Positions 15,186 to 27,789 of a DNA stretch of 64,000 nucleotides are shown here, one piece after another. The first letter of the stretch is position 1; each line of letters opens with the position of its first letter. The DNA lies in contig NW_026262723.1 in NCBI RefSeq assembly GCF_021869535.1, positions 34,100,001 through 34,164,000 on the forward strand, read 5' to 3'. This DNA comes from Mytilus californianus (taxonomy: Eukaryota). The translations under genes were made by a program, and so were the position numbers. The notes below the pieces were generated by a model. It was not told the DNA's origin, searched no databases, and saw only the letters and a list, made by a program, of their open reading frames with translations.

Positions 15186-16680
15186 GGGTTGTTTTGTTCT
15201 ACAATTGTATTATCGAACATAAAGTAAAAGACGTGGCACAAGTATATTTGATCTTTACAGAATCCTCAACCAAACGATTTTCAACAGTCAAACCTTAGTT
15301 TTTCTCTTATTAAGATAAGCCAATCAAACTAGATAAAAGAACCAAGGCCTGTGTAACGTTATACCTTTAGTGGAAAATAAACAAATTTACGGAAAATATA
15401 AGAAAGAATAACATAACAACAGTCCATAAACCACTTCTCCAAAAACAAACGAAATTGTAAGACAGTTCCCATCAAACTTGGTGTTGAAACAGGTGCTCAT
15501 GACACATTATCAGTTTATTCTAATATGACAGCCGTCGGATACTCAAACTCATCAGTCGAAAACAAATTGACAATGCCATGGCAAAAAACGAAAGACGAAG
15601 GAATGACAAATAACAGTACAAAAACACAGCATAAATGTATTTTCCATAAAAAGTAAAATTTGATCGATGTCGCATTCACTGATGTCAAAGAAGGAAAGAA
15701 AGAAAGGAGTGTAAGTATATATTACACTTACTTTCCAGTATGTTCTTTTTTGACCGGGCCTGATTTTGTGGTGTTACATATAAAATAGTTTATCCGATTC
15801 ATTTTGCAAAGAATTTCGATAAAACCGGTGCTAGGGATCGTCTTAAACTTGCAGTGAGGTGAAAGTTTTTTTTGTTTTTGGCTCCGTGTTGAAAGCCTCA
15901 TTGTGACTTTGAAATGAAGAACAGCAGTACAAGCGCTGTTCCATGCTTTTTGTGTGTTTTTTGCTGTCCATGTACTGATTTGGTGTCAAGGATAAATACC
16001 TTATATCCTTTGTTTATCTGTAGTATCAAGGATTTAACTTCAGCAAACAATTACTCAATAAGATTGTAATGGAAGGTATATTGATGTCATGTTTTTTGCT
16101 ATCTTGACCGCACATGCTAACTTACTGACAATTTGCAGTCAACATCGTCAAAACCCTTTTTTTAAACATTCGTAGTTACGCGTTCGTTACTGCAAAGATG
16201 GAACACTCAAGAACTTAATAACTCTCTTAAACTCAGTCATAACGTCTGTCCAATAAACCAATGATTGTTTTCGCTTTAAAACCAGGTTTAAGCCACCATT
16301 GTCAAATGAGAAAATGCCTGTACCAAGTCAGGAATATGACAGTTGTTTTCCATTTGTTTGATGTGTTTGAGTTTTTGATTTTGCCAATTATTAAGGGACT
16401 TTCCGAATTTTGAATTTTCTTTAGAGTTCGGTATTTTGTTGTTTTACTTTTTACAATGTTTACGTAATGTTAGTAGACAGACTTATATGGAATAATGACA
16501 GTACCGGCCAGACGTACACCTGTTTATCGATATCGGCACACACTTTGTGACAGAAAAATACAAAGTTATACCATTTTAAGTGTGCAAGTTATGATTATAT
16601 GAAATCGACTTTATCGAAAAAGTTAAATGCAAAAAAAAAAAAAAAAAAGGGTATGTAAGCATTAAATGATTTCTCTGTAG

Positions 16681-17124: not shown

Positions 17125-18404
17125 GTAAGTAAAAACACATGATTATTCATTGTTGCCTCTCGATTTTCCAAAAACTGCGATTAAACTTGCATATTATAAA
17201 CCTACGAGTATACTATTAGCTAAAAGCAAACGGTCATAATATCTTTAGATTTAAAGCTACAGTCCGCTGTATAAATGTACCTCTGTGATTTCTTGCAAAT
17301 TGAAATAAAATCAAAAGTCTTGAATGAGGAAATTTATGTAAACTTATGTCATTTTTAAATGAAACATCCTTAAATTAATAAATGATAGTTCGAACTGGAG
17401 ACTGCTTAGAAAAGTGACAAACATCTTTGGTCTTACTAGAGACGTATGACGACAAAACGTAGTGCATATAGAACAAATTGAAGTTTTGATCCTTATTTAG
17501 GATTGCAAGTTACTGTCCATACATCTTAATAGACCCATTGTCAAGCAGATAAACCATATAGCATTCGCTTCTTCGTTCCTTTCCCACCACGAGTATGTAC
17601 ATTGCTATATATGTTTGGCATTCACATGTTTTGGTTTGGTTTGAGCGTTACTGATGAAAGTTTATGCAGAGCGCTTCGGATGCACCAAATTAATAAAGTG
17701 CTATTTTCAGACTTTTCACCAACTACTACCATGTATTACAAACGAAAGTATTAGAGGTCAGACGTCAGAACAATACCGGACTGAAAAAGTGGTTGCCTTT
17801 TTTTTTTTATAACTGAATACGAACACAGTATGAGGGACTAAGCAATGGCAGATTATTGATATTATAATTGTCTAACAGCTTCAGACTGTAATTATTCAGT
17901 AAGATAATTCACACACACCGTGTGCACCCTTTATTGGAAGTCATGTCATTGAAAACTATGTAGTAGTATAGGGCAGTTTCCTGACAAAAGAGGAAATATA
18001 GAACAGCGACTCTTTTCACAAAAAATCTTACGACTAAAATTGATCGTAAGTTATACTGAAATGTGTATGACTTACGAGTATATTTACTGTTAAGATTTTT
18101 TGTGAAAATAGCCGCAGATCTTTTAACTTACAATAAAATAGAAAGATACCCGATGATAAATCAAAGAACCCATTAGTGTCTTAAGAAAAATACACGTTTC
18201 GATTTTTTTGCTGTTGACGTCTCTGTACTAACATTGTGATATAGATTGACATCGTGTCTCATATCTCAACATTATCCCGAGGTAAAAGTGATGTTAAAGA
18301 GAAAAGTAAATGTGTATGAGTTTGTATTTGCATGTGAAATATGGTACAATTTTTCTATTTTTGAATAATCATATTATTTCTTGTTTTAATACTCATTATT
18401 TCAG

Positions 18405-18554
18405 GAACTTCAAACGCTGACTGGATAATTTATACACTTTGTATTTCTAGTTGTTTCTTTCTTACTGGCTTTGGTCACTTGTTTCGTACATACAGAAAGC
18501 GACGATCACTTAAAGTAAGAATCATCAATGAAAAGGTTGTCCCAGAACCTTTAA
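18405..18554 (+). CDS. Gene B terminal exon 'a', 5' part: transmembrane segment (G)TSNADWIIYTLCISSCFFLTGFGHLFRTYRKRRSLKVRIINEKVVPEPL; interrupted by the retroelement
   Basis: TTTCAG acceptor, phase 1. A hydrophobic TM is followed by a basic stop-transfer RKRR. Aligns with 29805 onward. Read-through into the insertion reaches TAA at 18599-18601. Confidence 0.85.
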
Positions 18555-18965
18555 TTGCAATACTCATAGAAGAAGACCCTATATTAATACTGAACGAATA
18601 ACAATGAGATGAAGAACAACGATCAAGAGTTGTTGACGTATTTTCTAAACTATGTTGAAGTTCTTCCTTTAATCACAAAGTGATTACAAATTGTTCTAGA
18701 GTTGTCTCTCTTTGTCTGTTGTTAATTGTAATTCACAAATACCAAAATTAAAATACTACAGACTTTCTGTATATTATACTCATTTGTGTAGAGGTTCCAT
18801 CCTCTGTTTTTCCTTTATAACTTTTACAACTTATACAAAAACAATCATTCTAATTACACATACATTTTATTACACCAACTTGTATTTACATTTCCATGAC
18901 TAGAATATACATTTTTACTTTGTGGCATTACTTTGGCTACAGAGTATTCTATAATATTTTGTTGA

Positions 18966-19364
18966 GGCGCCAGGGTGACTACCGATTACCTATACACAAT
19001 GGCTATCAGCTGACCTATGTTGACATAGTGTCATAAAACCCCTGGTAGTTAAACACGGTTACACCACCACCTACCATGGGGAGTGACCGGGGAAAACACT
19101 CGTATTACCAATGCTCCAGTTATTAGTGCCCCACCTGTTGGCAGGTGTAGGCCTCCCCTCTATAAGATGAGGTGGATGAGGTCCCAGAGTTACCCATCTG
19201 TAGACCCCACCGTTACCACTAACCACATTTTCCAAACCTGCAAATTGTAGAACTTGTCAGGCCCAGAGCAAGGGCCGAGTGAAATAATCCCCCAATCACT
19301 ACCAGTCTCCCTGGACCGCCACATGAGAGCCCAAGTCAGCTACCAAATCTGACTTGGGTTCTCA
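18966..19364 (-). ncRNA. Candidate structured RNA domain in the 3' non-coding region of the YR retrotransposon
   Basis: GC-rich island with a long-range closing helix (18966-18980 with 19304-19320), several internal hairpins and a 16-bp hairpin at 19324-19364. Pairings were found by eye, and function is unknown. Confidence 0.55.
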
Positions 19365-19380
19365 CCTCCACAAATTTACA

Positions 19381-19977
19381 TTATTGAAGCATTGGAAAAG
19401 TTGTTGTGCGTAGGAAAGACTCAACCCCTCCTTGTATATTATTTAAGAAAACCTGATTTCCAGTTTGTGATAAATGAGTTCCATCTGTTCTGTATAAAGA
19501 CCCTTCACTTGCCCTAATGTTCTCATGTAAAATAGCTTTCCCCCCATTTTCTATTACAAAGTTTTTGACCACTGAATTCACTCTTTTTCTCTTCTGTTCG
19601 ATTATTGCACCCGCATTCAAGGGTGCAAAATGCCAGTATCTGCGCTGTAGCATTGAAGACCATATTATAATAACATTTTTAAATAAAGCCTGGTAACGTA
19701 GGATAGAACATTTTACATTTTCAATTAAACTATTCCCTGTCAATTCTAAATCTGTCAAATCATTAGCTCCACAGTGAATAATAATAAAATTAGGAGAAGG
19801 TAAAAATTTTCTTTTTGCATCCAGTACGGAGTCTAAATCTTTAATCTGTAAACCAGGTTGCCCAATCCAGTATGTTGTAACACCTTTGGACTCCCAGGTT
19901 GGTCCTTCCATATTTCTTCGCCTCTACATTGGCCCAATGAACAAGGGAACTTCCAACAATCCATAAAATCTTGGGAC
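19381..19977 (-). pseudogene. SGNH/GDSL-family hydrolase of the retroelement (frameshifted near 19890-19912)
   Basis: Block I WIVGSSL lies upstream in a different frame from the 176-aa ORF, which carries block II GQPG, block III HCGANDL and block V DGTH. Confidence 0.85.
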
Positions 19978-20011
19978 CTGTTAAAACTTGTAGCTTGTTA
20001 GCCTTTTGAAA

Positions 20012-21016
20012 CTAGAAAAATTGCAACCTAATATAGCGAGAATAAGCATGCGATTTCCATCTGCCTAATTTCATAATTACCTCCTCTGAGACCCCCTGCC
20101 TGGCTAGTTCCGTGGCTCCCTCAATTCTAAAACTATGTGACCTAAAATGACCTTTACTAATATGAAGAAAATGTGAAGCCTTTTCCAGTATACTGCTGAA
20201 TTGGTATCTAGTTAAAGGCATACCATTATAATGAATAAAGAAATCTTTATTATTACAGGTAGGTCGTACCTTTAAGTATTCGTTCGTGAGTTGTATCGGA
20301 CAGTAGTTTTTTCTGTTCTCAGGTATCAATAAAGTAACGGACTTTCCCTTTTGGTCAGTTTTTGACCACCTTACCCTTAGCTCCAGGACTTTTTTCTTAA
20401 CTAAAATATCAGAAATTGTTAAGTTGGAGCCATTTATAACAGACTTAGTTTTTGAAGTAGTGATTTCCCCTACCCTTAGCAAACCAAAGAAGGCAACTGA
20501 AAAAACTACTGAAAATAAAGCAGCTTCATATTTATTCTTACATACTTTATCTAAACAACCTATCATATCTGCTAACAATTGCACTGTAATTGGTGCTCTA
20601 ATGTCATTACGTTTCCCTCCTTGAATTCTTTTTATTCCTTCTAATGCCTTGCCAATTATAAAGAATTTTGTAGTATCCTGTATGCCTTGTATTTTATGAT
20701 GGTATGAAACTCCTGATATATAAGATGATATGGTACCCCCAGAAAGGCCTTGTACTGACAAAAAAGCTATGAAATTTAGCAAATCATTGACTGGCACTGG
20801 CCAATGCTGTTTCAATTTGTAAGATGATCTAAAATTACAAAGTTTCGACAGAGCCAAATTGTATGATTTTTGTGTATTTTTGGACACACCTTGATTGACA
20901 ATATAATCCGCCTCCTGACTTAAATGTTCCAGATCTGTGTTGGAATTTTGGTTGGCCACTGGTCTGCTTCTGGAGCTAGGCTTCTGAACTTCCCCCACTG
21001 AGAACGAGAAAGACAA
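20012..21016 (-). CDS. Tyrosine recombinase (phage-integrase family), 334 aa, frame intact
   Basis: Catalytic motifs GLLRVGE (R), SKTDQ (K), HSFR (H-x-x-R), LGRW and YSRYIR (Y). Overlaps the RNase H 3' end, as is usual in DIRS-order elements. Confidence 0.95.
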   Translation of the reverse strand: MSFSFSVGEVQKPSSRSRPVANQNSNTDLEHLSQEADYIVNQGVSKNTQKSYNLALSKLCNFRSSYKLKQHWPVPVNDLLNFIAFLSVQGLSGGTISSYISGVSYHHKIQGIQDTTKFFIIGKALEGIKRIQGGKRNDIRAPITVQLLADMIGCLDKVCKNKYEAALFSVVFSVAFFGLLRVGEITTSKTKSVINGSNLTISDILVKKKVLELRVRWSKTDQKGKSVTLLIPENRKNYCPIQLTNEYLKVRPTCNNKDFFIHYNGMPLTRYQFSSILEKASHFLHISKGHFRSHSFRIEGATELARQGVSEEVIMKLGRWKSHAYSRYIRLQFF

Positions 21017-22643
21017 TCAGCAATTTGGTTTTGTTTTGAAGGGATATAAATTGCCTTAACTAACGTATTGTTTTTTAAGTTCATTAAAACCATTTGTCTT
21101 ACTGAAGTCATAACTCTACTTGATTTGCTAGTTTTCATATTAATGATTTGAACAACCGCCTGATTATCAACATGAAAAATAACTTTTTTGTTAACAAAAT
21201 ATGATTCCCAGGACATAAGTGCTGCTACAACTGGAAACAACTCTAACAATGTCATATCTCTGGTGATTCCAGTTTCAACCCAATGTTTTGGCCATATGCC
21301 TTGGGCCCACTGACCTGCAAAATAGATCCCATACCCACCTTTGGACCCCCTGCACTATCTGTGAACAACTCTAATTTTTCATTTGAAACCCATACATTGT
21401 CGGTTATTACAGTGACACCATTGTATTGTTTTAAAAAGTCTAACCAAACTTCTAAATCTGCTTTCATCTGCTTGTTTACTCGAATTTTGTAATATGATTT
21501 TCTTACCCCGATTGTTGAATTTACGAGTCTGCGACAGAAGGTGCGGCCTGGAGCAACCACCTTACAAGCAAAATTCAGGAGCCCAAGAAGAGATTGCATA
21601 TCTTTAAGAGTTATTTTAGAACTGTCTAAGGTATCTCTGATTTTTTGTGAGAGTTTGACAAGTTTTTCATTTGGAAGCCGCATGATTAAATTCTGTGTAT
21701 CAAATTCTATACCCAAAAAAATGAGTAATGTAGTAGGCAAAGTAGTCTTGTCACTAGCAAGAGGAATACCTATTTTATCGCATACCTCTTGGAATATCTT
21801 CAAAGTATTGCCAACTTTTGATGTTTGGCTCGACTCGACAAAAAGAAAATCATCTAAATAATGGAGGATATGATCATTTCCGCTTTTTTGCTGTATTATC
21901 CAATGCAAAGCTTTTGCAAATTTCTCCCACAGGGCACAACTTATTGAGGCCCCCATTGGCATCATTTTATTAAGATAACAATCGCCCTGAAATTTTATCC
22001 CTAACAAGTCAAAATCCTGCGGGGCAATTGGCAACAAGCGAAAAGCCGCTTTTACATCACACTGACTTAAACGGGCAAATGTTTTGTGTCTATTAATCAA
22101 ACATGCTGCTTCGTCCACTGAACTGTACTGCACTGAACAATGATCTTTATCAATACAATCATTTATTGAATTATTCTCAGGATAGGATAAATGTTGAATA
22201 AGTCTAAAATCCCCATCCTTTTTTGGCACTAGCCCCATTGGTGATACCTGAAGTGTGGGAAAAGGCGGGTATCTGAAAGGACCAGCAATGCGACCAAGTT
22301 TAACTTCCTTCATTAATTTTTCTTTAAAAATGTTGGGTAGCTGTAATGCACATTTTAAATTGGAAATCTCCCTTGGTTCCCTAGAGCCAAAATATTTTAA
22401 TGAAAAACCATATTTGAAACCAGATATAATTTCATGTGCTACATTGTTATGTGGGTAAAATTCTAAATAATTTTTCAAGACCGATACTTTAACAGGAGTA
22501 TTTCCTAATGAATAAAAATTAATACTTTTTGTTACTTCTTCCTTGGGCCCGGTTATTACATTGGGCCTTTCTGTGTTTGCCACTGCATATTTCACATACA
22601 TGTTTAAACCTACAACGAGGGAAGTAGGGACAGTCATTACCAT
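20920..22643 (-). pseudogene. Reverse transcriptase + RNase H, split by a 1-nt frameshift near 21338-21342
   Basis: RT motifs PMGLVPKK, CDVKAAFR, MPMG, YLDD and FLGI. RNase H motifs FTDS, LLELFP, VDNQ and ADCLSR. The shifted frame continues GGYGIYFAGQWAQG...RDMTLLELFP into the 111-aa ORF. Confidence 0.93.
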
Positions 22644-23555
22644 TATTATAGTATTTACATGACATATTTACACTTCCACTAGTTACCTGTGATTGTTGAT
22701 GTGTTCTCGTGTTAGTGTTTGAAAGTGTAGCTGCATTTGAGTTATAATGACCACGATTTTGTGTATTTGTTCTATAACCCTGTGATTGCACTGACACATT
22801 GTTTTGTACTGTGGGAGATGTGATGTGTAATAGCCAATATTCACCGTGTATATTTCCCCAAGATAAATTTGGATTCTTTTCTATTTTTAGCCTAAATTGC
22901 TCGTCATAGGTGGCCCAGTTTTCTGACCTCGTTGCCGCTAATCTTATATCGCGCATATATTTTAACAATTCCTGTGCCCGTGTCCTGTATTTCTTAATGT
23001 AGACATTCATAAAAACCATAAATGCTGAAGTCCATTCATTTATGGACAAATAAACACCCGACGATCTTTTTTCAATGCAAATTTTCCCCCTTTTTAATTT
23101 CAAATCGCCCTCGTCAACCTCCTCAATTTCTTTTTGCGTTCTCAAAAGATAATGAAGCTCTATAAACTTTCCCTCCCAAATCTTTTCCTTAATTTTAAAA
23201 GGCACGTGTTCCCCTACTGTGTCATGAATGCTAGACTCTTGTGTCGGAGTGAAATCAATGGAAATATTTGCCATTTCAAAATTTTTGTGTGACGGGCGTG
23301 CCTAAAAAAGGGGAATGCCCGTGCATCCTCCTCCGACTCATTACCTGATGATATTTCAGCATTTTCTTCTGGTCCTTGGGTCTCGACGTGTCCCACCTCC
23401 TGTGTTTTCCTGACCATTCTTTTCCGTCCAACTCCGTCCTTCTTTTGAATGATTTCTTCGTTCCGCACTCCCTGTCCTTCTTTCCTGCTGGTCGTCCTCC
23501 TCTTCTTTCCAATGGCTCTTGATGGCGATCCCCTGGCATTTCTTTTGTTTGGCAT
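22519..23555 (-). pseudogene. Gag-like ORF1: basic N-terminus (MPNKRNARGS...), frameshift near 23270-23310, C-terminal Cys/His finger
   Basis: ORFs 23214-23555 and 22519-23274 overlap out of frame. The C-terminus CKYYNNGNDC...CRFKHVCEICSGKHRKAQC is typical of DIRS/Ngaro gag. Confidence 0.8.
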
Positions 23556-23789
23556 CTTTTCGTTTAAATAATTTAACTAATTTCTGCAGCACCTGCTTTG
23601 TTGTCGACAGCAAATTAACAAGTGCCCGATACGGGAATTCCAAAATTCAGATTCCACCTGAGAGCGCCATCTATGGCCATGCCAAATATGGCAATGAGCT
23701 AAAGGCTGCAACACCCACACACCCACACAAATATTTGATTGAATTAAACCAGATTATTGAAAATATAAAATTTTGATAATCTCTATTAA

Positions 23790-24508
23790 CGCCAAATATG
23801 GGCGACTTTAGTGAAGTAGACAAAACGCCAATAACATTTGTCATTACGGGTTCAAATGTTACACCCAAAGCATCTCATAATGAAACTATTAACTTTGTTT
23901 TTCATGAAAGACAATCTAATACAACATGTAATGAGGATGATGAAGCTGGTTATTTTGATCTGTATTTCGCGATGAACGAAGACGTCAATCACCAAGTAGA
24001 AAATCATCCATTGCGAAAGGAAAGCCTTTCAACTAGTTCTTTCAATACAAGCGTTGTTAGTCAAGATAATACAGAATTTCTTAAACCGCTTCAGGAATAC
24101 TGCCACGAAGATTCACATGCGTGTGAAGTATCCGTTACGGTTCATGAAAGACAATCTAATATAGCATGTAAGGAAGATGATAAAGATGATGAAGCTGGAT
24201 ATTTTGATCTTTATTTCGCCATGAAAGAAGACGTCAATCACCAAGTAGAAAATCATGCATTGCGAAAGGAAAGCCTTTCAACTAGTTCTTTCAACTCAAA
24301 CGTTGTTTGTCAAGATAATACAGAATTTCATAAACCGCTTCAGGGATACTGCCGAGAAGATTCACATGCGTGTGAAGTATCCGTTACGATTCATGAAAGA
24401 CAATCTAATACAGTTTATGATAAAACACTGCAGACCTCTATTCCATCGACATATCGAACTGGCAATTTACAGGATTGCACAAACAAGTATGCTGAATCGG
24501 AAAAATAA
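23790..24508 (+). CDS. Gene B terminal exon 'a', 3' part: cytoplasmic tail, separated from its TM by the insertion
   Basis: The 236-aa ORF aligns residue for residue with the tail at 29805-30760 (FSEVDKTPITF vs YDEVDENPLTF; SHNETI vs SHYETI; QDNT; EDSH) and is in frame with the left junction. Confidence 0.85.
23901..24411 (+). repeat. In-frame tandem duplication in the cytoplasmic tail (units of 240 and 249 bp)
   Basis: TTCATGAAAGACAATCTAATA recurs at 23901, 24141 and 24390. The protein unit HERQSN...EVSVT is repeated. Confidence 0.95.
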
Positions 24509-25047
24509 TTGATGCTTGTGGTTCAATTGAATTTAACAAAGTCAAATCGATTAGTGAGGAAAAGTCGAAGACACTTCAACAGGAACCAATTCAAAGATGA
24601 GTCAGTGGAAGAGCTTTTGAACATCCTTTTTTTGTTGTTTTTTTTTATCCAAAACGAGATGCTAGTAGTAATTTAAATGTCAGTGATTTTAAAAAATGTA
24701 AATAAGTTATTGTGTTTATATTTAAGACTGTCTAGTTAACGTGCAATTCGATTGTGGTTATATGTTATGAAATATTTCTATAAAATAATTTGTTGTATAT
24801 CGGATGTAGATCTTGTAATCGAGGTTGAAATTGTGACACAGACTGATTCAAAAGGACATTAAACTTATCATTCATTGTTTTTACAAATTATGTGTACAAA
24901 GTTGAAATTAGCGTTCCAGTATTCTATAAATAAAGTTAACTATAACATGCTTAATCTCTTACTTTGTTCTATCAAATATCGAGAATTCAATAGATTTAAT
25001 AGACAATTTGAAAACAAGCCAAATGTTATCACCATCATGTGTGAGGC

Positions 25048-25240
25048 TATAATTGTGGGATGCCGAGATCTTGTTGATAAATATTCCGTATCGGCTTCAC
25101 AAATTATACATGATGGTCTTGGGGTGTAGATTCTAGGTGCTGACGTTGTTTATCGTCTTGATTGTGTGTTGAGGTCCCCCTTTTTGGTCCTAGTATATTT
25201 TTAACCTTTGCTGTTTATCCGTTTTTGATTGTATACCTGT
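25048..25240 (+). mobile_element. Short 3' fragment of the Penelope-like element seen at 43270-44430
   Basis: RDLVDKYSVSASQIIHDGLGV* and the following UTR match 43880-43990. Confidence 0.8.
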
Positions 25241-27789
25241 GGCGTGGATAGGTACTTATGAATCCCGCCATTGTGTTACTGTGCTATGGTCAATTATGAG
25301 TTCTTGTCTTTCATTTTTGAATGTGTACTTTGTCTGTATGCCATTTTGTGTTTCTTTGTTGGAACAGTTGTTTGTTTTTGTAGTGATTAGGGTTGTTTTG
25401 CAATGTCGACTGTTGTGCTCCGGGTTTTGACGTTTTTACCTATTGTGTCTGTTTTTTTGTTTTTTTTTTTTTGCTCACACGTTGTTGTCAATATGGTGGA
25501 ATTCTATGCGACTGTCATACAAGTGAAAGGTTTAGCTGGCTATAAAACCAGGTTTGAGCCACCATTTTCTACATAAGGAAATGCCTGTACCAAGTCATGA
25601 ATATGTAAGGTTGTTTTCCATTCGTTGGATGTGTTTGAGCTTTTTATTTTGCCATTTCATAAAGGACTTTTCGTTTAGAATTTCCTATACAGTTCGGTAT
25701 TTTTGTTATTTTACTTTTTAAAACAATAGTGCGTTAAAATCATATTGATTCACATCGGATCTATGACCTACATGTATGGATACTTTTTTCACGTGTAACA
25801 TTTACATTCCGATTTTGTACCTTATAAAAAACACATTTATGTACACCTTTTACATAATTCAATAACCAAATAAAGTCGTTTTCTATAGGGGAATAGTCAC
25901 GTAGTTTAATGGATAGGGGGGAGGGTATTATATGGTATTCTGATTCTCATGTTTTTAAAAGAGAAATTATTGTAACATGTGTTATGCTAAGTCGAAAGAA
26001 AAAATATATCGGTTAATTTATTGAAAGTTTCGGCTTTTCTGAGGTAAAAGTGTCATGAAACGAGGGGGAAAACATAGAAAATTCTTTTATAAAGTTAATA
26101 TGAAAATTACATACCGAAGTGACTTGTATTTTTCATACACCGTAACATTTCATTTGCTTCCTGCTTGGAATTTAATACAGCAACAATTTAAATGTAACTG
26201 TACAGTGATTACTAACAATTATATCTAGATAAGTGAGCTTCATTCCACCTTAAAAGTGACCTGTTGGGCGTGGTTATATCGTACCGGAGAGATAAAGAGT
26301 CTCCCTATTTAATACAATCGGTAAACTGTGAAACAATTTCCTGCAAATCATTTAAAATATAATATTTGTTGACGTTACATAAGTCAGATAATGCATATTT
26401 CAAGGCTTTTCGTGTCGTTTAACACATCTTGAAGTGAAGTGTCATGATTGCCAAAGAAAGAACTTTTAAACACTAAAGAACACTAAATCCATTGGATGAT
26501 GGATGTGTACTGATTGATATTTTAGTCTTAGATGCATGATTTTCTTTATTAGTTGTTATTGGCTTTGAACTATCTGTCAGTAACTGCGAGTACTTTCAGA
26601 TCTGTACTTAGTGTCTTATTGTTGTGGGGATGTATAAGTACCCTGCCATGTCCACTCTGTGTTTTTGTTAGATGTATTTCTGCTTGTATCGATCTGATGA
26701 GTTAAGCCTTTTTCAACTGATTTTTATAGTTTGTAGTTCTGTTGTACTGTTACCCCACTGTCCCAGGTCAGGCGGAGGGTTGGCGAGCATTCAAACTAGT
26801 TTAACCCCGCCACATTATGTATGTGCCTGTTCCATGTCAGGAGCCTGTAATTCAGTGGTTGTCGTTGTAGATCATATTTGTTTTTCGTTCATTATTTTAT
26901 ACATACATCAGTCCTTTAGTTTGAATTGTTTTACATATGTAATTTCGGGACCTTTTATAGCTGACTATGCGGTATGCGTTTTACTCATTGTTGAAGGCCG
27001 TACGGTGCCCTATAGTTGTTAATTTCTGCGTCAATTGGTCTCTTGTGGAGAGTTGTCTCATTGGCAATCACACTACATCTTCTTATTTTTTTATATTTTG
27101 AGTGTCCGTCTTTCATTAAACCAATTCTGAAACCACTCGGTCCGTTATACGACAAGAAAGACCGTCTTACACGGAATAATGATGGGACAAACAAAAATTC
27201 AAGCCAGCATTGCATTTGTCGAACGATAGCGGCGATAGTAAAACTAAATAAATTGATTGATTAATTGTTGGTTGCTTAACGTCCAGTGGCAAATATTTCA
27301 TGCATATTCAGGACGAGAACAAATTAACAATTAATACAATAGGTAGGTTCTGTAAGAGGGACGTCCGGGATTAAGGTCGGAGTAATTTAGACTGCCACGG
27401 GAAATGAGGGTATATTGGATAGGGACAGAAATTTAGCCTTGCAACAGGTCACCTACAGACCCCTCAAAGAGTTGTTGCAGGGGTTCTTAACGTGCAAAGA
27501 GCGTGGCACTCTCTTTACACGAGGCATCGGATTTAACGTCCCCATTCTGACCGGACGTGGCTGCAAATTTGTACATACCGCACAGCCAAACGGACACCCC
27601 ACTTTAGCAAGGGTTTTACCAATTAACTTTTGGTTGCTCCATTTTTGATTATATAGTATATTACTGCATTCCAAGATGAATAAGATAAAAATACGAGAAT
27701 TTCATTGGTTAACAGGACACATTCTTAAAGTTTCTACATTAAAAAGTGTATGCATTGCGCTCTATTAATAACTTTTCGTAATATAAATT

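Follow-up and report, generated by a model that had tools for sequence, protein, structure and literature searches.

Retrotransposons of the SGNH-bearing Ngaro-like group carry gag, RT/RNase H, tyrosine recombinase (YR) and SGNH genes in that order (PMC9210276). Those with split direct repeats are described as having an A repeat at the 5′ end and a B1-A2-B2 arrangement at the 3′ end (Goodwin and Poulter 2004, via PMC9210276 and PMC7192593). No primer has been determined for the cDNA synthesis of tyrosine-recombinase retrotransposons; for DIRS-1, a hairpin close to the mRNA's 3′ end has been proposed to act as one (PMC7192593).

We analysed a window of 64,000 nt from the genome of Mytilus californianus (contig NW_026262723.1, positions 34,100,001–34,164,000), to which all plain coordinates below refer. 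It contains, on its minus strand, an element whose family shares the gene order, the 5′ A repeat and the 3′ B1-A2-B2 arrangement of these retrotransposons, and in which a structured RNA domain sits within repeat B. Unlike the described Ngaro elements, the family bears a spacer of ~300–350 nt, X, between A2 and B2, which is unrelated to the rest of the element and is also present in the related loci L047, L082 and L083, and about half of the Mytilus copies have only the A-int-B form. Relatives were collected by protein searches and contig look-ups from marine metagenomes, sequencing runs and the clam Tegillarca granosa.

The host element and its split direct repeats

The element copy extends over 18551–23789 (minus strand, 5239 nt) in the A-int-B form and is flanked by TTAA. 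Its limits follow from junction reads and from homology with 30 other genomic copies, which among the compared loci always ends at 23789 and 18551. The coding part, all on the minus strand, comprises the ORFs for RT (21252–22643), RNase H (20920–21255) and YR (20012–21016), supported by matches above the cut-offs to RVT_1 (E 1.6e-13), RVT_3 (E 9.5e-06) and Phage_integrase (E 4.3e-09), and a last ORF (19381–19911) for a putative SGNH/GDSL-like hydrolase. The Pfam similarity of the latter is weak, with DUF459 (20.7 bits, cut-off 27.2) and Lipase_GDSL_2 (19.4 bits, cut-off 32.9) both below cut-off; in its homologues either PF13472 is present or the source name is SGNH esterase. The stop codon of this ORF, TAA at 19383–19381, is found 15 nt ahead of a hairpin that we call hp1. 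The nearest named protein relatives are from Mytilus galloprovincialis and M. edulis. The host is a Ngaro-like retrotransposon, probably of the SGNH type, and an ordinary member of a known group.

Other repeats and elements lie around it and elsewhere in the genome. Two copies of a ~215-nt repeat, 72–86% identical, bracket the retrotransposon region at 16243–16456 and 25509–25723 (plus strand), 9267 nt apart, and tandem repeats of ~240–249 nt (copies 93% identical) are located at 23901–24437 (plus strand), just past the 5′ end of the element, where they overlap a plus-strand ORF at 23798–24508. Further tyrosine-recombinase families of the same genome, apparently intact and 36–47% identical to P0022, are found, for example, at C99:68728022, C121:100350629, C1:116009525 and C35:37375715.

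Repeat A (23563–23789, minus strand, 227 nt) occupies the 5′UTR and ends 7 nt ahead of the gag ATG, and repeat B (18551–19320, minus strand, 770 nt) forms the 3′ end. In about half of the copies (14 of 30 loci), B1 is followed by A2, a second copy of 23789–23563 placed directly after 18551, by the 346-nt spacer X, which is not found in the full element, and by B2, a second copy of 19320–18551. The family thus bears split direct repeats of the Ngaro type, A1-int-B1-A2-X-B2, and the copy in the window, without A2-X-B2, is its A-int-B form. The first base of repeat B, 19320, is also the first base of the helix that closes the structured domain, with hp1 just outside the repeat. Since the domain is the 5′ part of B, it is present twice in complete copies; at least 190 copies of it, with 91–98% identity, were counted in the genome. 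The initial annotation had suggested that the domain might substitute for missing terminal repeats; it makes up the first 355 nt of B and lies inside a split repeat, so it is not a stand-in for repeats that are missing.

The domain is also retained in non-coding A-X-B units of 1341 nt, which may be non-autonomous partners of the element or products of recombination between the repeats. On one contig, at least five such units follow directly behind a full element in a tandem array (L031:6944-9854, C79:4969943 onward; also L035–L039), and solo units are found in L040 and L041. We rejected the solo units as evidence proving A and B sufficient in cis, because recombination between A1 and A2 yields the same product; more generally, recombination between repeats could account for both the solo A-X-B and the A-int-B forms, and neither form is proof that mobility requires no more than A and B. 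B1 and B2 of the same element show 3, 13 and 14 differences, against 5–23 between elements; such counts, which a burst would lead one to expect, carry no information on co-replication.

The layout of A2, a ~300–350-nt spacer and B2 recurs in distant Ngaro families with recombinases 41–62% identical (L047:2886-3716, L082:9133-10629 and L083:11023-11835), and the similarity between the Mytilus and L047 spacers is limited to the first ~60 nt. The X spacer seems to be a constant, undescribed part of the split repeats. At the other end of the element, the first ~35 nt of repeat A (23755–23789, minus strand) form an AT-rich imperfect palindrome with arms AGATTATCAAAAT and ATTTTCAATAATCT, and the first 56–73 nt of the repeat are 85–88% conserved in L047 and L048. 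TTAA is found at the element junctions, a single TTAA being common to both sides of the B|A junction; the palindromic start of A together with the TTAA junctions makes a candidate site for the recombinase. Over long range, repeat A is no more complementary to the 3′UTR than a shuffled A is (−110.8 vs −104 ± 9).

Fold and transcript context of the domain

The region behind the SGNH gene had been noted as a GC-rich island, and its G+C content is indeed 0.487 at 19000–19399, against about 0.30–0.35 on either side. Folded as sense RNA, the 399 nt from 19364 to 18966 reach −176.2 kcal/mol, compared with −135.8 ± 6.6 for dinucleotide-shuffled sequences (z −6.1), and none of 100 shuffles was as good. 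Control windows of 399 nt from the same element gave z values of +0.52 (18551–18949, the rest of repeat B), −0.14 (recombinase), +0.36 (RT) and +1.03 (5′ end); as these are near zero, the domain is a true folding outlier.

The structure comprises two parts. The first is hp1 (19323–19365, minus strand), a hairpin which in the minimum-energy fold has a stem of 15–17 bp and a 9-nt loop, and whose flanks, UUUGUGGAGGUG and CAUGUGGCGG, are conserved. It had been annotated as a 16-bp hairpin with one mismatch at 19324–19364; the hairpin and its mismatch are confirmed, and the stem in the fold has 15 bp. The second, starting at the first base of B, is a multi-branched domain of 355 nt (18966–19320, minus strand; z −5.8 without hp1), supported by a consensus fold and pair counts. 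The closing helix proposed between 19320–19304 and 18980–18966 appears in the minimum-energy fold with 14 bp, as do the helices CCUG-CAAGU/AUUUG-CAGG, GGUGGGGUC/GACCUCAUC, GCCU-CACCUG/CAGGUG-GGGC and UGAC-CUAUGU/ACAUAG-GUCA. Two local hairpins of the initial annotation, GGCCC/GGGCC and GAGUG/CACUC, are replaced by long-range pairs in both the minimum-energy and the consensus folds, and two changes in L052 favor the long-range version (C-G to U-A at alignment columns 110:271 and G-U to A-U at 103:278). With z −6.7, the antisense strand likewise stands out, although its fold is 30 kcal/mol weaker than that of the sense strand. The argument that G-U pairs favor the sense strand holds in the alignment, whose predicted pairs contain 98 G-U against 11 A-C cells, and the sense fold is better than the antisense one in six of six homologues, by 20–44 kcal/mol. 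Both the better sense folds and the G-U excess indicate that the structure belongs to the sense RNA.

Behind the closing helix follows a conserved single-stranded tail (18872–18965, minus strand; CCUCAACAAAA ... CUGnnGCCAA-N7-9-CCACA), which aligns in L047, L048, L051 and L052 and whose motif CUGnnGCCAA-N7-9-CCACA is retained in L082 and in the Tegillarca locus L083. It is followed by AATAAA, a likely polyadenylation signal (18866–18871, minus strand), at position 450 of B, 453 in L047 and 449 in L082, which places it ~95–120 nt past the closing helix. The remaining 3′ part of repeat B (~300–415 nt) is AT-rich, unstructured and not conserved between families, the homology with L047 stopping at 18835. 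Given the conserved AATAAA just downstream, hp1, the domain and the tail are essentially the 3′UTR of the mRNA. The RNA data, 52 reads from ~6% of one run whose library strandedness protocol is unspecified, are all in one orientation over the domain, with the first mate always on the minus strand; depth, from few reads, peaks over the domain at 3.5–4.5 and drops to 0.1 just past AATAAA. This fits, weakly, a sense transcript ending shortly past AATAAA. Three reads join L031:6400 to 6589 with 16 other letters between them and ends GT..TG; they probably derive from a transcribed copy with a deletion inside the domain and not from splicing. A tRNA primer-binding site was also considered at UGGCGCC, the 3′ end of the closing helix, and rejected, as the motif is not kept elsewhere (UGGGCC; CAGACC in L082).

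An Rfam search at E ≤ 1 returned no match in 17500–25500 of the window nor in L047, L048, L052, L082, L083 and L031, save an unrelated sub-threshold SECIS; this SECIS_1 match is in the element flank on C79 (L031:1097-1161, minus strand; 33 bits against a gathering score of 35, E 0.0089). The absence of a recognised ribozyme core, remarked upon before, agrees with this result for the window and its relatives: as no Rfam family matches, none of the known ribozymes is recognised. Other retrotransposons do carry ribozymes, HDV-like ones in R2 and hammerheads in Penelope-like elements. A self-cleaving ribozyme, which the initial annotation had considered, or an exonuclease-resistant RNA, could set an RNA end at the start of B. 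We consider such a role very improbable: the RNA is large, highly conserved, tightly folded and starts exactly at a repeat boundary, but the window and five related loci match no Rfam model, and in L082 and L083 the boundary of B does not keep its place with respect to the structure. From the upstream sequence to the domain the RNA depth increases, but this rise fits an ordinary 3′ bias, and no pile-up of RNA starts or ends was seen among the 52 reads, which are too few to count as absence.

Conservation and compensatory changes in related elements

The domain is more similar between families than the genes next to it. L047 is 87% identical to the window in the domain, compared with 70.5% in the SGNH and 71.2% in the YR coding DNA; L048 is 82% identical, compared with 64.0% and 66.2%; and in L051 and L052, for which the comparison is with SGNH only, the values are 87% against 70.6% and 87% against 71.9%. 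Judged by these identities, the domain is shown to be under stronger constraint than the proteins of the element itself. In three further relatives with 64–65% coding identity, L056, L049 and L079, hp1 and then the conserved start are still visible before the contigs end within the first 40–90 nt of the domain; evidently, assemblies break at the domain repeat. Scanning metagenomes for an invariant 18–22-mer pattern returned one contig, of the same family and cut at the domain (L050), and scanning bacterial genomes gave one match, in a Kosmotogaceae MAG contig, which was taken for chance; viral contigs gave no match by this pattern scan nor by a protein-profile scan. In the Mytilus genome, queries with the domain as it stands in L048 and L051 retrieved nothing but the same family, and the L082 and L079 versions gave no match.

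Folded independently, L047 (z −6.3) and L048 (z −6.15) adopt the same architecture as the window. The structure is found in part in more distant relatives. L082, with a recombinase 49% identical at the protein level, has A1/A2, B1/B2 and a ~300-nt spacer, and the 3′ half of the domain is recognisable at the start of each B, with a fold stability of only z −2.0. Neither the 5′ half nor the long closing helix is present in L082, and hence not all families have the full architecture. L083 from Tegillarca granosa, with a recombinase 41% identical, has the layout A1-int-B1-A2-X-B2, and its SGNH stop is followed by a perfect 10-bp hairpin, then by AUGUGG and then by a structured region with z −4.7.

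Compensatory changes are present well above the level of the controls. In an alignment of six sequences (A3), the consensus fold has 123 pairs, with 97.1% of the cells paired, and 10 pairs have changed on both sides with the pair kept, compared with 0–1 when the 3′ partners are slid by 1–3 columns; none of 500 column shuffles reaches the observed pairing, double-change count or covariation score. With L082 added (A4), double changes are seen in 14 of 68 pairs, compared with 0–3 in the slid controls, in a small sample of ~7 independent lineages that are all random genomic or metagenomic copies. Most of the clear covariation comes from hp1 and from four or five hairpins. Among 10 sequences hp1 has six unrelated stem sequences of 8–20 bp, and seven of its alignment pairs have changed on both sides. 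Other clear cases are the hairpin 19152–19128, the CUAUGU/ACAUAG hairpin, the GCUGAUAGCC/GGUAAUCGG helix, the hairpin CCCAUGGUAGG/CUACCAGGG, which has a variable loop length and is replaced by a different hairpin in L082, and one long-range pair that changes from C-G to U-A in L052. Most helices of the domain are invariant and are therefore neither supported nor contradicted by covariation.

Within the Mytilus family (43 distinct copies, 95–99% alike), covariation was uninformative, with only six common variants. Paired and unpaired sites have decayed equally there (1.2% vs 0.9%), as expected for dead copies, which is also what would be seen if the region were non-functional, be it a patch that is GC-rich by chance, the remains of an ORF or an unrelated insertion. 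This explanation is extremely improbable: stops in all six frames rule out coding potential, the domain is found at the same place in every related element found, it is more conserved than the coding DNA, and it carries the compensatory changes described above.

The complementary 8-mers of the pseudoknot or switch proposed in the initial annotation, CUGGUAGU (19305–19298) and ACUACCAG (19049–19042), do exist, but their pairing lacks covariation support and competes with two predicted helices. At these positions, L048 has one wobble, compatible both with the pseudoknot and with the competing local hairpin, L052 has two uncompensated mismatches, and the distant L082 has an unrelated local hairpin in place of the ACUACCAG partner. 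On the aligned copies, the pairing of 19305–19298 with 19049–19042 is unsupported.

The very high conservation of the primary sequence, unpaired segments included, would also fit a role at the DNA level or an exchange of modules between families. As DNA, the region could have promoter or enhancer activity, or it could be bound by the tyrosine recombinase where B meets A in circles and tandem copies; B is upstream of A in these forms, and both strands are folding outliers. We judge this improbable, given that the compensatory double changes and the G-U pairs, which would be A-C mismatches on the other strand, indicate the sense RNA, and that 415 nt separate the region from the crossover site, the TTAA of the B|A junction.

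The position of the domain relative to repeat B bears on another alternative, in which B provides homology for a template switch and the fold and hp1 pause the RT, similarly to the retroviral R/TAR, with no specific recognition by a protein. In the Mytilus family and in L047 the first base of the domain coincides with that of B, with hp1 4 nt upstream of the B boundary, and in L082 and L083 the start of B is again near this hairpin (~33 nt upstream and ~20 nt downstream, respectively). These shifts of the boundary relative to the structure in other families nevertheless speak against such a device, homology alone requires neither a conservation of 85–90% between families nor a kept architecture, and the non-conserved 3′ part of B indicates that membership in the repeat does not by itself impose conservation. 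A strand-transfer device of this kind is a distinctly unlikely explanation.

The invariance of loops and single-stranded segments from family to family suggests that proteins bind there. Such proteins could be host factors, recruited by the 3′UTR for the export, stability or translation of the unspliced multi-ORF RNA and not for replication. Elements of the export and stability type include the CTE of simple retroviruses, the RTE of IAP elements and the hepadnaviral PRE. The place in the 3′UTR just ahead of the conserved AATAAA, the structure on the sense strand and the maximum of RNA depth over the domain agree with a post-transcriptional element, but none of these features is specific to it; there is no Rfam match to a known export or stability element and there are no U-rich ENE-like loops, and the retention of the domain in A-X-B units and its duplication in the split repeats fit replication at least as well. 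We therefore regard a post-transcriptional role as fairly unlikely.

Possible roles and known RNA systems

The region is very probably a functional cis-acting RNA structure. Of the initial proposal of a cis-acting RNA, the part concerning a conserved sense-strand structure is supported by its stability, by conservation above that of the coding DNA and by compensatory changes. For its role, the reading that we prefer, and to which we would give a nearly even chance, is that of a cis signal for the selection of the RNA by RT and/or Gag and for the start of cDNA near the 3′ end, in analogy with the 3′UTR RNAs of R2 and “stringent” LINEs or with hepadnaviral epsilon. The domain would act in cis as a handle by which the RT and/or Gag of the element itself pick the sense RNA, first-strand cDNA synthesis would begin near the 3′ end of the RNA by means of the domain, and the repeated domain, in B1 and B2, may supply the homology for a template switch that restores the ends. 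The hairpin hp1 is missing ahead of B2 and from the A-X-B units, so whatever B alone provides does not include it. Two considerations lead us to a signal for replication. The RTs of other poly(A) retroelements recognise structured 3′UTRs. In addition, the priming of tyrosine-recombinase retrotransposons is unsolved (PMC7192593).

A more ambitious version, which we see as unlikely, would make the domain the initiation platform for the reverse transcription of YR retrotransposons, a large, conserved RNA machine that either places the primer or serves as its own, perhaps once a new catalytic or nuclease-resistant fold has processed it, with the B1/B2 duplication driving the end-restoring template switch. 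The interest of the domain would rise sharply if it proved to be the initiation site. Because the start of reverse transcription and the rebuilding of the ends are unsolved in DIRS and Ngaro elements, the domain offers a concrete, mutable target. In bivalve genomes, whose assemblies typically break exactly at this repeat, it further provides a sensitive signature by which Ngaro elements and their non-coding A-X-B derivatives can be annotated. In a literature search of incomplete coverage, no paper was found that links Ngaro with a ribozyme or stem-loop element, and the Ngaro structure papers give only repeats and ORFs; the conserved 3′UTR RNA inside repeat B and the constant spacer of A2-X-B2 thus appear to be undescribed.

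The DIRS-1 hairpin (Poulter and Goodwin, via PMC7192593) belongs to an element of the same order, is likewise found towards the 3′ end of the sense RNA and concerns the question of priming. It is ~14 nt long and placed at the end of the RNA, whereas the Mytilus structure consists of a 43-nt hairpin and a 355-nt domain, followed by ~95–120 nt and a poly(A) signal. With such a long stretch and a poly(A) signal behind the domain, simple fold-back priming is unlikely.

The 3′UTR RNAs of R2 and of the “stringent” LINEs are recognised by the RT, adjoin the 3′ end of the RNA, are kept by non-autonomous partners and are required in cis for the initiation of cDNA. A structured 3′UTR near the RNA 3′ end is common to them and to the Mytilus element, and the mechanism that we propose for the domain is the same. 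These elements, unlike the one in Mytilus, replicate by target-primed reverse transcription and lack both a recombinase and split repeats; moreover, R2 3′UTRs conserve structure with little sequence, whereas the Mytilus domain conserves both, and there is no relationship between them in sequence or Rfam. With the self-cleaving ribozymes of retrotransposons (HDV-like, hammerhead and twister), the domain has in common a compact, conserved RNA fold at an element boundary, but it matches no Rfam model and differs from them in size and architecture. Finally, the hepadnaviral epsilon and PRE and the retroviral CTE and psi are likewise cis-acting structured RNAs of reverse-transcribing elements. Epsilon sits in the terminal redundancy and hence is found twice in the genomic RNA; the Mytilus domain, although much larger and unrelated in sequence, is similarly present twice, in B1 and B2.
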